Below, in pieces: positions 221-14,171 of a stretch of 64,000 nucleotides of DNA. How positions within the stretch are numbered: position 1 is the stretch's first letter; each line of letters begins with the position of its first letter. Below the pieces are notes generated by a model. The model did no database searches, was not told where the DNA came from, and saw nothing but the letters and a program-made list of their open reading frames with translations. The DNA lies in contig JALDTO010000207.1 of the NCBI GenBank assembly GCA_023515725.1, forward strand, positions 147,573 through 211,572. The letters run 5' to 3'. The position numbers and the translations under genes were made by a program. This DNA is from Amoeboaphelidium protococcarum X5 (lineage: Eukaryota > Fungi > Aphelidiomycota).

Positions 221-248
221 GCAAAATGGTGTTTTTAAACACCTTCAA
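221..248 (+). other. Histone mRNA 3' stem-loop (GGTGTT-TTTA-AACACC at 228-243) with A-rich 5' flank
   Basis: 6-bp stem and 4-nt loop about 40 nt after the stop; the same 28-mer GCAAAATGGTGTTTTTAAACACCTTCAA follows all three histone genes. Confidence 0.88.
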
Positions 249-504
249 TTGATTACTTTAAGGTGTCTGTTGAAATTATTGATGTAATTGCCGTTATGAA
301 CTTAGTTTTTTAAATTCATCAGTTTGTATTTAGATATGTTTTACTATTGTGTACTGTAAATTAATTCCCTACTATTCTCAACAATCATCCCCTGAGTTGT
401 AAAGTAGCCCCTTTGCAAACTGAAGATGTCTCCTAAACTGCGTGGCGTAGATTTAATTGAATATTTTCATTTCACAATTGAAGTCGATAAGGAGAAATAT
501 AAAT

Positions 505-1653
505 ATGATTTTCTTTTTGCTTCTCCTGCTTACTCTTAACCACTCTGTGTATTCTGTATCCCATAGCAGAGTGTCGAATGGTGGTCCTTTTGGGAATTTT
601 CAAAGAGAGTGTCGCGTCTATTAGCAATAAGATGAATCTTTGGAGAAAGCTATTTAAAATTCCGACCGTATTGCTCAGTTTATAGGCCAGTTTTTTCAAG
701 CGACAGCTGGTGGTTAGCTATCTGAAATGTCTGACTTGTGCCAGTAGGATTCCTAATTGTGTGATCAATTGAGACTGGACGATATTATCTCTAGATTTAA
801 GAATGTACACAAAACGAAGGGTGGCTCTCAATTTGTACTCGACAAATATAAGGATGAGCATGGTGAGATCAGAGATTTTCATTTGTTCAATGCTTTGGAC
901 ACTAAAGAGTCTAATCCTCCTGATATTAATCATGAACGCGTTGAAAACTCTCTTAGATCTCTCCGGGAATATCATGCTAATCAGGATTTGACACCACTCA
1001 TTCGCAAGTATGTGCAGCTGTGTGACGATTTCATATGGCGTACATATGGATTCCATGTAGACCTTTTTGATTACATGCTATCGGGGTCCAAGTCTTTTAC
1101 TTGGACTTGGCTACGTGGCGAATTCCTGTCGAAGTTGGAATCTTTGGATCAGGTATTGACTAATCAAGAATCTCATCCATCGTCTGGAGTCTAGCTGTAC
1201 AAACGTAATGCCAATGAGCCGCCTGTATTACCTTTTAAAGTACTAAAAGCGGCTCTCATTAGAATCGCAAGTGTCGTTGCTAGTCCATTTGTTTTCATAG
1301 CTGCTGTGTTCTCTTTCATTTTCGGACTAGTGTTCTTTAAGATTGTGCCTCTGCTGTTTTGTGGCTCGTTGTACGGCGGTAGTGTTGCGAGTCAATGTTG
1401 TGTAAACGGGATCTTCTGTGTGCCGGAGGTTTGCTGTAGCACTGCTTGCTGCAGAGTCGCGACGTGTGATTCTGGTTCAGACATTGTATCCCGAATTAAA
1501 GAAGCTCTGCTAGGTTGTCTTCGTGGATGCGACCAAGTAAGCTGGGAGGCTATAGCCAATCTTCCCAACTTTTGGGCGACTTTCAGTGCTGATCTGGTTC
1601 AACTTGCAGTTAAACTGTATGCGGGCATTCCTCTTAATCAAGAGATCGAGTGA
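505..1653 (+). CDS. Orphan secreted or membrane protein, 382 aa, with an LYKR site and a hydrophobic Cys-rich C-terminal part
   Basis: Continuous table-6 ORF joining track ORFs 757-1194 and 1306-1653; N-terminus MIFFLLLLLTLNHSVYS resembles a signal peptide; TGA stop. Confidence 0.75.
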
Positions 1654-1777
1654 ATTAGATAGACAAGAGATTCGAAATATATCAAAAGCATTTTGAAAGC
1701 ACATTTCTATTTCTATTCTCGATGATATTTACACATTTTTTGTTACCTTCGCCAGAACGTAGCCAGCTATTCCACGA

Positions 1778-2740
1778 TCAAGCACTGGCAATGTTCTTCA
1801 TCGCATCTAAATTCTAGCTAATCCATGGCTGGAAGTATTCCAAGTTGGTGTAAACAGCAGGGACGTTTGCTGGGAGAAGCAGCGTCCCGAATGTAATCTA
1901 ACCGCATCCATCCCCAAAAGATACAAGTCCCACCGCAACTGGATTCGTTTAATCAACGTACAGAGGACCGCCAGAATCTCCTTTACATGAATCGGATCTT
2001 AATCTTTAACCTTGCGCGCAAAAAACACTACCACTGGGGATCTCCTTGTTGAGCTTCAACAGTTTCTCGCACTCATCAAACTCTGACAAATACAGATCAA
2101 TCTGTTGAGCATGATTCGAGACTTAATTACTATGGTACTGCGTCGCGCCCCAGCCGGCAAATTCAAGTTTATCAAAAAATGACACATCATCGTCCACACG
2201 ACCATTTTTGTACATAACATCCTTCCAGCCAGATTGCTCAGTATTCTGCGGAGAATAAACTATATCAGACCGATTCAAACTGATTGGGCGAAGATACTTT
2301 AGATTGCGACGCGTGAATGGGAGAGGATACAACTACAACTAGGCGATATCATAGGCCGTCTATCCATTTTAAAACACTTTAAATTCCGAGTGAACATTAA
2401 CGCTATTGACCTTAAAGACTACGGACCTGTCGTCCTACCCTAACTCTCTCAATCTCAGAAAATTAACGCGTACATAGTAATGCCCATTTACCATGCGGGG
2501 ATCCTTATCAGCAAAGCAGTGACCAGCTGTAATAACAGAATACACTCCATCCTCTGCAGCAACTAGCGCCCCAGTACAAAAGTGACTCCTATCAGGCATT
2601 TAAATACTCGCTAGAAAAGGGAGAGGCTCTTCTAGCGGCTATCCATTCACAGCACGCTTGCTCAGTGAAACGATTGATTCATCACCAAAAGCACACCCAA
2701 TGATTAACACTGCAATGGATAAAACCAAATTCAAATACAT
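1778..2740 (-). CDS. Secreted trypsin-like S1 serine protease 1
   Basis: Signal peptide, LSKR-AVNG, TAGHC and SDSCKGDSGGP motifs; 320 aa, TGA stop. Confidence 0.92.
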
Positions 2741-3231
2741 TTCAATCTAATTTCTATACTAAATCTATGTGAAAATTATATCTATCGACGCTGAAGAATG
2801 AGAAAGATACAATACTTTGAGAATATACTTGAAAGAGCCAGTTACTAAGCGCCAGACTAGTTCACGAGGTTACACGTATGAAACTGGCTACTGAAATCGA
2901 ATTTATCATAATGTTTTATAATGCAACACGCTCTGAGCCTGCATAATATAACTTCCTTCATAGTCTCCGTAATATGAACCACTCGTTGGCTCAGACAGAT
3001 GATCAATTTTAGAAAGTGTGGCTGAAACAGAACAAGCGTTTCTACTCTCTTTTCTTTCGCCTTTCAGTCTGTCGCGCGTCATTCGTCGCGTTTCTTCTCT
3101 CTCTGCTCAGCTCTTCAGGTTGGAAAGAAACAGTTCTTCGTTACGGAACACATACTCTAATTCTATCCTTCATACTGTTCATATTTGATAATATTAACTT
3201 TTTATCTAAGTACTTATTTAATTGAGTGAAA

Positions 3232-12585: not shown

Positions 12586-12966
12586 TCACATCTCCTAAGA
12601 AGCAGCACTCTTGGACTTCTTTGGCAGCAGAGTAGTGTGAATGTTTGGCAAAACACCACCTTGAGCAATAGTAACATCACCCAGCAGCTTGTTCAATTCT
12701 TCATCATTTCTGATGGCCAACTGCAAGTGACGAGGAATGATACGAGTCTTCTTGTTATCACGAGCAGCGTTACCAGCCAACTCCAGAATTTCAGCAGTCA
12801 AGTACTCCAGGACAGCAGCCAGATAAACTGGAGCACCAGCACCAATACGCTGAGCATAGTTACCCTGACGAAGCTTACGGTGCACACGACCAACAGGGAA
12901 CTGCAGGCCGGCCTTGGTAGAACGGGACTTTGATGGTTTAGCAGCAGTATTCTTTCCTCCAGCCAT
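12586..12966 (-). CDS. H2A: Histone H2A, copy 2
   Basis: Full H2A fold; ends AAS-TAG(Q)-EM-TGA. Confidence 0.98.
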
Positions 12967-13415
12967 TTTAGTGAATAAGTAAGTTGTTTATAAGAGAGTT
13001 GTATACAATTGTAATAGTTGTAAATTCTAAACACACACACGAAGAGAGGAAGAGAGAGAAGTTGAGGCGTCGCGAGAATTTGTTCGGCCGCGCTGAGAGT
13101 TTTCTCGTTTCACTTTTCTGTTTTCGTTCTTTGTCTCATTGACTCTCTCTGTGTGTTGATGTTTGTGTGTTTGCCCGTTTCAGCGATGAGGCGAGTAAAA
13201 CCGTCGCTGAAAATCCAGTGGCTTATGGAGCGAGCGCTTTCTCTCTCTCTCTCTGTTGGTGCCGCTTGTGCAAAGACGAGAGCGAGAAACTGAAACGGAA
13301 ACTTTCCAATTCGCGCCGAACAAGAACGCCGCCTCGACCAATTCACTTCTTTTCTTTGTTTTGTTACAGTGAAATAGTTTGTTAATTCTAATAACACATC
13401 AATATATTCAACAAT
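12967..13415. promoter_or_regulatory. Bidirectional H2A-H2B promoter with mirror-image motifs
   Basis: Divergent gene pair; central inverted repeat at 13178-13212; GAGGCG...TTGTTCGGC motif in opposite orientations at 13064-13092 and 13312-13335. Confidence 0.75.
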
Positions 13416-13796
13416 ATGCCTCCAAAGTTTGAAGCTGCAAAGAAGCCTGCATCCAAGCAACCTGCTGGAAAGAAGCCTAAGGTTGACGCTAAGGCTGGTG
13501 GTCGCAAGAAGAGCCGTAAGGAAAGTTACTCCACTTACATCTACAAGGTGTTGAAGCAGGTGCATCCTGATGTTGGTATCTCCAACAAGGCTATGTCTAT
13601 TCTCAACTCTTTTGTCAATGACATCTTTGGCCGTATTGCTGGTGAGGCTGGTCGTTTGGCTACCTACTCCAAGAAGAGCACCATCAGCTCTCGCGAGATT
13701 CAGACTGCTGTCCGTCTGCTGTTGCCTGGTGAGTTGGCCAAGCATGCTGTCTCTGAGGGTACCAAGGCTGTCACCAAGTACACTTCCAGCAAGTGA
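13416..13796 (+). CDS. H2B: Histone H2B
   Basis: [19 protein letters not shown]...[12 protein letters not shown]. Confidence 0.99.
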
Positions 13797-13828
13797 GTGC
13801 TCATCTGTGTTGGTTTTTTTATATACAC

Positions 13829-13856
13829 GCAAAATGGTGTTTTTAAACACCTTCAA
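13829..13856 (+). other. Histone mRNA 3' stem-loop of H2B (stem-loop 13836-13851)
   Basis: Same 28-mer as after both H2A genes although the rest of the UTR is unrelated. Confidence 0.88.
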
Positions 13857-14171
13857 ATTATCTCTATTTATGAGTAATGGTTGAAATTATTTTGTTTTAT
13901 TTCATTTGTGATTAGCATCTAATGCACAATATTAAATTTATTTATTCAAACTTTCATCTTCGCTTATGGCACTCGCTCTCCTCATCCTTTCCTGTTGGGA
14001 CTTTCGCTCGCCTGCTCTCCAAACTGTTCCTCTCTTTGGCCAACTCATGATCGCCCATCGCCGTTCTGTGATCAACCTTAGTTCAAATTTTTCGCGCTTT
14101 GTCCATTCCTCCTCCAATCTCTACTATAATATTCGTATTGGTTATCAATATAATAATTAAAAGATTTAAAA

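Follow-up and report, generated by a model that had tools for sequence, protein, structure and literature searches.

In the aphelid Amoeboaphelidium protococcarum, the core histone genes are followed by a 6-bp stem-loop (hairpin 1) and, directly after it in all four core histone classes, by a second hairpin (hairpin 2) of 10-13 bp that begins at +1, counting from the end of the stem-loop. Judged from homology, hairpin 1 is very probably an SLBP-binding stem-loop, and its occurrence together with an SLBP gene makes A. protococcarum a new member of a pattern already reported in early fungi. Hairpin 2 is a new element, of which no description was found in the literature searched. The two are best explained as a two-hairpin 3' cis-element of aphelid replication-dependent core histone genes; the whole mechanism, the role of hairpin 2 included, is a tentative proposal.

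The way in which histone pre-mRNAs are cut in early fungi that have SLBP and the stem-loop but no recognisable U7 machinery is left unsettled by a 2026 survey (bioRxiv 10.64898/2026.10.14.759114). A. protococcarum is culturable and combines one invariant stem-loop at 16 of 16 loci with a clade-wide second hairpin and a predictable cut site (+4). Should hairpin 2 take the place of the HDE-U7 duplex, it would represent a cis element that naturally stands in for an snRNA guide; otherwise, the finding chiefly puts aphelids on the map of SLBP retention.

Stem-loop and SLBP gene

The window, i.e., the whole stretch of 64,000 nucleotides analysed, carries exactly three copies of an identical 28-mer (221-248 and 13829-13856 on the plus strand, 12527-12554 on the minus strand), for which the chance expectation is 0 (100 shuffles). 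The original prediction had placed these copies about 40 nt after the stop codons of H2A, a second H2A copy and H2B; the stem-loop positions hold (Table 1), and the distances are 38 nt for both H2A copies and 39 nt for H2B. The window does not include the 5' part of the first H2A copy, which precedes it beyond an N with a 120-nt duplication. Reading frames were translated with UAR as Gln (translation table 6), and proteins bearing TAG or TAA were searched as stop-free pieces.

Table 1. Histone genes and 3' elements in the window (positions within the window)
Feature	Position	Strand	Remarks
Histone H2A copy 1, 3' part	1-189	+	Ends SQEM, TAG = Gln; stop TGA 187-189
Conserved A-rich 5' flank of H2A copy 1 stem-loop	221-227	+	
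SLBP-type stem-loop after H2A copy 1, 6 bp + 4-nt loop	228-243	+	RF00032 24.4 bits, sub-gathering
Hairpin 2 after H2A copy 1	244-274	+	About 11-12 bp, closed by TTCAA/TTGAA
Hairpin 2 after H2A copy 2	12501-12531	-	12 bp
SLBP-type stem-loop after H2A copy 2	12532-12547	-	
Histone H2A copy 2	12586-12966	-	Intronless, 126 aa (table 6); stop TGA 12586-12588, UAG read as Gln
Divergent H2A-H2B intergenic region	12967-13415		Presumed shared promoter
Histone H2B	13416-13796	+	Intronless, 126 aa; 99% identical to A. protococcarum KAI3634536.1; stop codon 13794-13796
SLBP-type stem-loop after H2B	13836-13851	+	
Hairpin 2 after H2B	13852-13885	+	About 12 bp; weakest copy, z about -0.5 to -1.0

Genome-wide, 16 stem-loop matches were found with at most two mismatches (reversed control: 0), and all of them sit behind core histones, four each for H2A, H2B, H3 and H4, at 34-40 nt past the stop wherever the gene end is on the contig. 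The hairpin is present at all H3 and H4 loci found, which excludes its absence from these genes. In a further search the perfect 6-bp stems were histone ones only, and histone H1 has no stem-loop within 110 nt downstream. Stem pair 2 of the element is G-C and loop position 3 is U, the diagnostic positions as defined in bioRxiv 10.64898/2026.10.14.759114, and its 5' flank is A-rich.

The Rfam search proposed with the original prediction gave a divided answer. Histone3 (RF00032) is the top Rfam match in the window (24.4 bits, E 0.018, 223-268), with a second match at 12507-12552 (21.8 bits, E 0.17), but the H2B copy is not listed and both scores are below the gathering score of 34 bits. The survey describes this model as having low sensitivity outside animals (bioRxiv 10.64898/2026.10.14.759114).

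An SLBP gene with an intact RNA-binding domain is present (PF15247, scoring 95 and 93 bits on a pair of homeologous contigs), so that the absence of an SLBP homolog is excluded and the assignment to the SLBP-type element stands. Both halves of the SLBP domain match the fly and human SLBP structures (PDB). In the QKQI-YGKNT motif Ile replaces Tyr; the same change occurs in 16 of 36 motif matches among relatives, and its reading as a lineage-specific adaptation was rejected because it is so common there.

The GGTGTT stem had been regarded as a divergence of this lineage, which is contradicted by an identical 16-mer stem-loop in metagenomes behind GC-rich histone genes that we take to be chlorophyte from their GC content and H2B C-terminus. 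Mimicry of the algal host stem-loop by the parasite is a less favoured reading of this shared 16-mer, as loop variants in other aphelid-like loci and the wide occurrence favour ancestry or convergence.

Hairpin 2

Apart from the 28-mer, the H2A and H2B UTRs had been called unrelated. This does not hold, since hairpin 2 lies directly behind the stem-loop in every class. In 11 distinct A. protococcarum copies, the minimum free energy fold has its closing pair at +1 or +2 and forms 10-13 bp, and the pairing probability of +2 to +5 is at least 0.95 in most loci. The base of the hairpin is TTCAA/TTGAA in H2A, H2B and H4 versus TTCAC/GTGAA in H3, with one compensatory A-U/C-G change, and the inner stems are unrelated in sequence between the histone classes. 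TTCA at +1 to +4 is invariant in A. protococcarum and is also preserved in a sister lineage. The loops differ in both size and sequence; a Rnt1-type tetraloop rule was rejected, as they have no features in common.

Across aphelids, hairpin 2 is a stem of 7-16 bp that begins 0-10 nt past the stem-loop, and it is found in 10 of the 11 aphelid-like lineages (mean z -1.95), the exception (L111/L112) having the stem-loop without a significant hairpin 2. For +1 to +50, the mean z is -2.0 in A. protococcarum and -1.75 in environmental aphelid-like loci, with base composition controlled by the shuffling, while the signal of individual copies is often modest, with z from -0.5 to -1.5. Control values are about +0.1 to +0.2 at +51 to +100, 0.0 to +0.2 upstream, and -0.32 for 62 non-histone 3' flanks. 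The 14 chlorophyte-like stem-loops differ in being followed by ACC/ACA and in giving no hairpin 2 signal (mean z +0.08); the 11 lineage means are separated from these loci, which probably come from few species, by a Mann-Whitney p of 7e-4. Hence, from the folding statistics and the one compensatory change, what is conserved in hairpin 2 is mainly its shape. A TTCGA/TCGA variant that looks compensatory was left uncounted, as the contig end that carries it looks error-rich.

Possible routes to the 3' end

We infer an SLBP-bound element whose 3' end formation is U7-independent, of the CPSF73 type and aided by hairpin 2. In such a pathway SLBP would bind hairpin 1, the ancient stem-loop, as homology suggests, and the CPSF73/symplekin cleavage module would cut a few nucleotides past the stem. 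In A. protococcarum the cut would most likely fall after the invariant CA at +4, with TTCA at +1 to +4 as the candidate cut site. Hairpin 2 may supply in cis the short RNA duplex that is given in animals by the HDE-U7 pair, or alternatively may gate access to the cut site; in either role no U7 snRNP would therefore be needed. The product would be tailless, or would carry a short poly(A) or oligo(U) tail.

CPSF73 and symplekin-C were found in the A. protococcarum genome; both proteins also act in canonical polyadenylation. The symplekin N-terminal profile gave no match despite the presence of symplekin-C, and negative gene searches are therefore insensitive here. A Pfam LSM scan gave 31 matches in 16 families, which from their motifs we take to be the seven Sm proteins, Lsm1-8 and NAA38. 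Lsm10 and Lsm11 are not among these families, a moderate negative for Lsm10 and a weak one for Lsm11, and no extra SmD2 paralogue was found. The best U7 match (RF00066) reaches 17.7 bits (E 2.5) against a cut-off of 34, with an animal-trained model and only 65 candidates scored. The insensitive search for 3'hExo/ERI1 (PF00929) returned, from six candidates, REX4-like and oligoribonuclease-like genes only. A purine-rich HDE, expected in the metazoan pathway about 10-20 nt past the stem, was not found in A. protococcarum at +10 to +25, where the purine fraction is 0.31-0.50 and the region is paired in hairpin 2.

Public RNA data, examined for positions 12250-14150 of the window, consist of assembled contigs only (runs X12 and X14). 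H4 contigs end at +7 (X12) or at +14, followed by a fold-back chimera (X14), and H2A contigs end inside the loop (X14) or extend more than 70 nt beyond the stem (X12), neither being decisive. A sister-lineage contig with both ends exactly at the stem plus TTCA was rejected as evidence of mature RNA ends; an overlap of exactly 30 nt between its ends (k-1 if 31-mers were used) marks an assembly-graph break.

A somewhat doubtful but possible alternative is that cleavage and polyadenylation take place after hairpin 2, or that the RNA is trimmed back to the 3' base of that hairpin, and that the mature 3' UTR retains both hairpins. SLBP and hairpin 2 would then serve stability, translation, cell-cycle control or poly(A)-site positioning, as in the 'SLBP-SL plus poly(A)' intermediate of Allomyces and Catenaria. 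The survey reports a stem-loop and then poly(A) in Blastocladiomycota (bioRxiv 10.64898/2026.10.14.759114), and the long X12 H2A contig, the X14 H4 contig reaching at least +14, and the abundance of histone contigs in X12/X14, apparently host-parasite RNA-seq (library type not on record), fit this arrangement. AATAAA-like hexamers occur within 200 nt at many loci, but they have no fixed position and are missing at several. The stops of the H4 contigs in two runs point, not decisively, the other way, and the invariant TTCA, kept in the sister lineage too, resembles a cut-site context.

The most far-reaching version of the preferred cis-duplex mechanism is that the U7 snRNP was lost in aphelids and that a cis hairpin directly behind the SLBP stem-loop took over from the trans HDE-U7 duplex, giving self-guided, U7-independent tailless ends, which we consider rather unlikely. 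Against the preferred mechanism in general, its predicted cut site in A. protococcarum falls within the base of hairpin 2, which would need melting. Moreover, a duplex alone may not suffice, because Lsm11 stabilises CPSF73 for cleavage in animals (PMC12774660). Related early fungi also have the stem-loop plus poly(A) tails, according to the survey (bioRxiv 10.64898/2026.10.14.759114).

It is less likely still that a divergent U7-like snRNP operates and that hairpin 2 hides a short HDE, an ATTG/TTGA(A) word, until SLBP opens it. Mouse HDEs do lie in hairpins opened by SLBP (PMC1635294), and the survey credits Rozella with Lsm11 and a U7-like candidate (bioRxiv 10.64898/2026.10.14.759114). Of the +1 to +50 windows, 85% contain ATTG and 70% contain TTGA/TCAA, versus about 30% of flanks, the words having been picked post hoc; however, the common word has just 4-5 nt, its position ranges from +27 to +34, and it covaries with the 5' arm. 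Lsm10 was not found beside 16 other Sm/Lsm families, nor were an SmD2 paralogue and a U7 match, and +10 to +25 is not purine-rich in A. protococcarum.

It is quite improbable that hairpin 2 is an RNase III or RNAi substrate, cut at its base by an Rnt1/Pac1-like enzyme or handled by Dicer and Argonaute. The genome has two genes for Dicer-like proteins and two for Argonautes, each as a homeolog pair, and if a 12-15 bp stem were cut at its base, the cut would come to lie just past the stem-loop. No single-domain Rnt1/Pac1 gene was seen in a search that is not fully sensitive, the variable loops follow no tetraloop rule, and bulged stems of 7-16 bp are short for Dicer. A precedent is C. elegans, where histone mRNA is processed without U7 via CSR-1 (PMC13525598).

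Least probable of all is that hairpin 2 is functionless, AT-rich flanks folding by chance and homogenised paralogues inflating the signal. In favour of this, several single copies are non-significant alone, one lineage lacks the hairpin and the four classes are not fully independent because all start with TTCA. Against it stand composition-controlled z-scores, a signal confined to +1 to +50, recurrence in 10 of 11 lineages with sequences that are unrelated, and the compensatory pair.

Comparison with known systems

Compared with the metazoan system (RF00032, HDE, U7 snRNP with Lsm10/11, FLASH and CPSF73), the 6-bp stem, 4-nt loop, G-C pair 2, loop U3 and A-rich 5' flank are the same, as are the position 34-40 nt after the stop, the intronless genes, the SLBP domain with its TP-K motif and the CA at +3/+4. 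It differs in that the aphelid stem scores below the Rfam cut-off, that in A. protococcarum a purine-rich HDE, U7 or Lsm10 was not found, and that a structure-conserved second hairpin adjoins the aphelid stem. The 'metazoan-style pathway' of the original prediction is thus right as to the SLBP-type element but overstated beyond it; of the genes for which it proposed a search, SLBP was found, and Lsm10 and, with a weak negative, Lsm11 were not.

Among early-diverging fungi, Rozella, Chytridiomycota and Blastocladiomycota have both SLBP and stem-loops according to the survey (bioRxiv 10.64898/2026.10.14.759114). With these fungi A. protococcarum has in common that SLBP is retained and that U7 machinery is sparse or undetected, and with Rozella that the stem-loop follows every core histone. 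The survey already places the loss inside fungi, so that the originally proposed loss after the aphelid-fungi split is no novelty, and stem-looped histone genes were found here in Paraphysoderma. Paraphysoderma and Rhizophlyctis stem-loops differ from the aphelid ones in having no abutting hairpin. In the survey's main text, aphelids are not named and a description of the second hairpin was not found.

A further comparison is with the non-polyadenylated histone mRNAs of chlorophytes (Chlamydomonas/Volvox type; PMC13130582), as A. protococcarum shares its 16-nt stem-loop with the chlorophyte-like genes; HDEs and Lsm10/11 are reported from green algae in the survey (bioRxiv 10.64898/2026.10.14.759114). 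CSR-1-dependent processing in C. elegans likewise combines SLBP and a stem-loop without U7, but is guided by siRNA in trans, and a downstream hairpin is not mentioned in the review (PMC13525598). Mouse H4-12, H1t and H2a-614 pre-mRNAs also have secondary structure downstream of the stem-loop (PMC1635294). Those hairpins are gene-specific and hide the HDE that pairs with U7, and the cut site is left single-stranded there, whereas aphelid hairpin 2 has one geometry in all classes and covers +1 to +5.

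Histone stem-loops and the SLBP gene

The original prediction reported one 28-mer behind three histone genes of the window; all three copies lie where it claimed, and shuffled sequences contained none. Histone3 is the best Rfam match in the window, at 24.4 bits, below its gathering score of 34. The window H2B shares 99% identity with A. protococcarum KAI3634536.1 and 90% with Paraphelidium. TAG and TAA codons occur within conserved domains, and genes come as homeologous pairs, both in keeping with A. protococcarum.

Stem-loops behind histone genes of the window (UAG read as Gln)
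Feature	Position	Strand	Distance from stop
Stem-loop after H2A copy 1	228-243	+	38 nt past TGA
Stem-loop after H2A copy 2	12532-12547	-	38 nt past TGA
Stem-loop after H2B	13836-13851	+	39 nt past TGA

A genome search with a 21-nt stem-loop pattern (up to two mismatches) returned 16 matches, and the reversed pattern none. The matches follow four genes each of H2A, H2B, H3 and H4, 34-40 nt past the stop, with gene identity read from a partial gene for the four at contig ends; absence of the hairpin from H3 and H4 is thus excluded. No such stem-loop was found in the 110 nt searched past H1. The H3-H4 pairs form two inverted copies ~8 kb apart (contigs C135 and C156), and the H2A-H2B pairs two inverted copies ~14 kb apart (C206).

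An SLBP homolog exists in two copies, one on each of two homeologous contigs (PF15247; 95 and 93 bits). The protein is ~620 aa long and carries its RNA-binding domain at the C-terminus; both stop-free halves of this domain match fly and human SLBP structures. Genes for CPSF73 and symplekin-C are also present. The Pfam LSM search gave 31 hits, which we take by their motifs to be SmB/D1/D2/D3/E/F/G, Lsm1-8 and NAA38; neither Lsm10 nor Lsm11 was among them, a search for SmD2 found no additional paralogue, and the U7 model RF00066 had no significant match. Such negatives call for caution, because the symplekin N-terminal profile also found no match although symplekin-C was detected, and the RNase_T search scored six candidates only. 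The absence of Lsm10 is moderately supported, that of Lsm11 weakly. Of the animal-type pathway originally proposed, the element and SLBP are kept, but the U7-dependent part (Lsm10, U7, purine-rich HDE) was not found. Lsm10 and Lsm11 never co-occur in one fungal genome (bioRxiv 10.64898/2026.10.14.759114).

SLBP and stem-loops are known from Rozella (all core histones), chytrids and Blastocladiomycota, and the main text of that study makes no mention of aphelids (bioRxiv 10.64898/2026.10.14.759114); the aphelid case fills a gap in this distribution. Since those groups retain the system, its loss lies inside fungi. The stem is not a lineage-specific divergence, as the identical 16-mer also stands behind histone genes of contigs that are GC-rich and chlorophyte-like. 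Judged by sequence, the aphelid element would work like the SLBP stem-loop system, to which it belongs by both its element and its protein.

A predicted second hairpin

The stem-loop and SLBP are of a known type; what is new is a second hairpin, found by folding the sequence 3' of the stem. No description of such a hairpin was met in the literature searched, whose coverage is incomplete. In the 11 distinct copies tabulated, hairpin 2 starts at +1 or +2, closes at +30 to +39 and has 10-13 bp. The conserved 3' arm word is read as its predicted closing strand. The closing strands are TTCAA/TTGAA in H2A, H2B and H4, whereas in H3 the closing pair is altered on both strands (TTCAC/GTGAA); the inner stems differ wholly between classes. 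For each class, the rough chance that +1 to +5 meet their exact complement in a window of 15 positions is 0.02-0.04; the classes are not fully independent, because TTCA is common to them.

Metagenomic H2B relatives cluster with A. protococcarum and Paraphelidium (support 86/85, under the starred threshold), and locus L092 was placed as aphelid-like by a one-residue deletion in the H3 tail. In the stem-loops of these relatives G-C pair 2 is conserved, as is U3 where the loop has 4 nt; the loops are TTTA, CATA, TGTA and ATTA, plus some of 5 nt. Those of L102 and L109 have 5 nt and would be missed by a scan requiring 4-nt loops, as in the 2026 preprint. In L119 (Rhizophlyctis), where the stem-loops lie ~85-95 nt past the stops of H2A and H2B genes with introns, the stem has an A-U base pair and G-C pair 2, and the loop is TTTC.

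A hairpin of 7-16 bp, starting 0-10 nt past the stem, occurs in 10 of the 11 aphelid-like lineages, in largely unrelated sequences, with a loose bias to ATTG, TCAA and TTGA (words picked post hoc). Lineage mean folding z over +1 to +50 is -1.3 to -3.2, except L111/L112 (+0.7). Controls gave about +0.1 to +0.2 at +51 to +100, 0.0 to +0.2 upstream, -0.32 for 62 non-histone 3' flanks, +0.08 for 14 chlorophyte-like stem-loops and +0.4 and -0.4 for Paraphysoderma (lineages vs chlorophyte-like loci, Mann-Whitney p = 7e-4). Two loci of one environmental sample encode the same H2B: L115 carries stem-loop and hairpin 2, and L101 neither, nor does its adjoining intron-containing H2A. This contrast is in line with the familiar division of histone genes into replication-dependent and polyadenylated ones.

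Possible roles in 3'-end formation

In animals, the symplekin NTD, CPSF73 and CPSF100 together hold the duplex of HDE and U7 (PMC12774660). SLBP would bind hairpin 1, CPSF73 would cut after the CA at +4, and hairpin 2 might replace that duplex or gate the cut site; this is our tentative preference. The animal duplex forms in trans, whereas the aphelid hairpin, of similar length, is in cis. Somewhat less likely is that both hairpins are kept in polyadenylated histone mRNAs; Allomyces and Catenaria carry poly(A) tails 3' of stem-loops (bioRxiv 10.64898/2026.10.14.759114). RNA evidence came from assembled contigs: those of H4 end at +7 and +14, and one of H2A continues >70 nt past the stem, a pattern that neither demonstrates nor rules out mRNA termini at +4/+5. 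Contig L141 breaks off at stem+4 on either side; a shared 30-mer accounts for these two ends, which were rejected as RNA ends. It is improbable that hairpin 2 conceals an HDE for a divergent U7, in the manner of mouse pre-mRNAs (PMC1635294); no purine-rich HDE was found downstream of the stem. Two Dicer-like genes and two Argonautes are present. Processing by RNase III/RNAi, like that in C. elegans, has a slim prospect, and chance origin of hairpin 2 a slimmer one still.

Histone proteins and gene surroundings

Just 5' of window base 1 (L007:2585-2824), H2A copy 1 has a 120-nt tandem duplication with a single N joint, most likely an unmerged scaffold overlap and not a genuine long H2A. The canonical H2A C-terminus is SQEM (175-189 and 12586-12600; TAG = Gln), an H2A.X-like motif, and SQEH in aphelid-like relatives. 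The H3 genes (L002-L005) lack one Ala between K23 and K27 (ATKARKS); environmental contig L092 shares this deletion, which may be a clade marker. Among the histone-fold hits of the genome, a candidate-limited search, no H2A.Z, H3.3-type variant or CENP-A was found. A trypsin-like serine protease gene (~12100-12440; GDSGGP motif, read by eye) is convergent with H2A copy 2 and ends ~60 nt from its hairpin 2. Window H2B (13416-13796) and the aphelid-like proteins P0022-P0056 have DIFGR instead of the usual DIFER, and all grouped H2B relatives but L097 carry the signature. DIFGR is a handy, if not exclusive, marker of aphelid contigs in metagenomes, as one shark H2B also has it.
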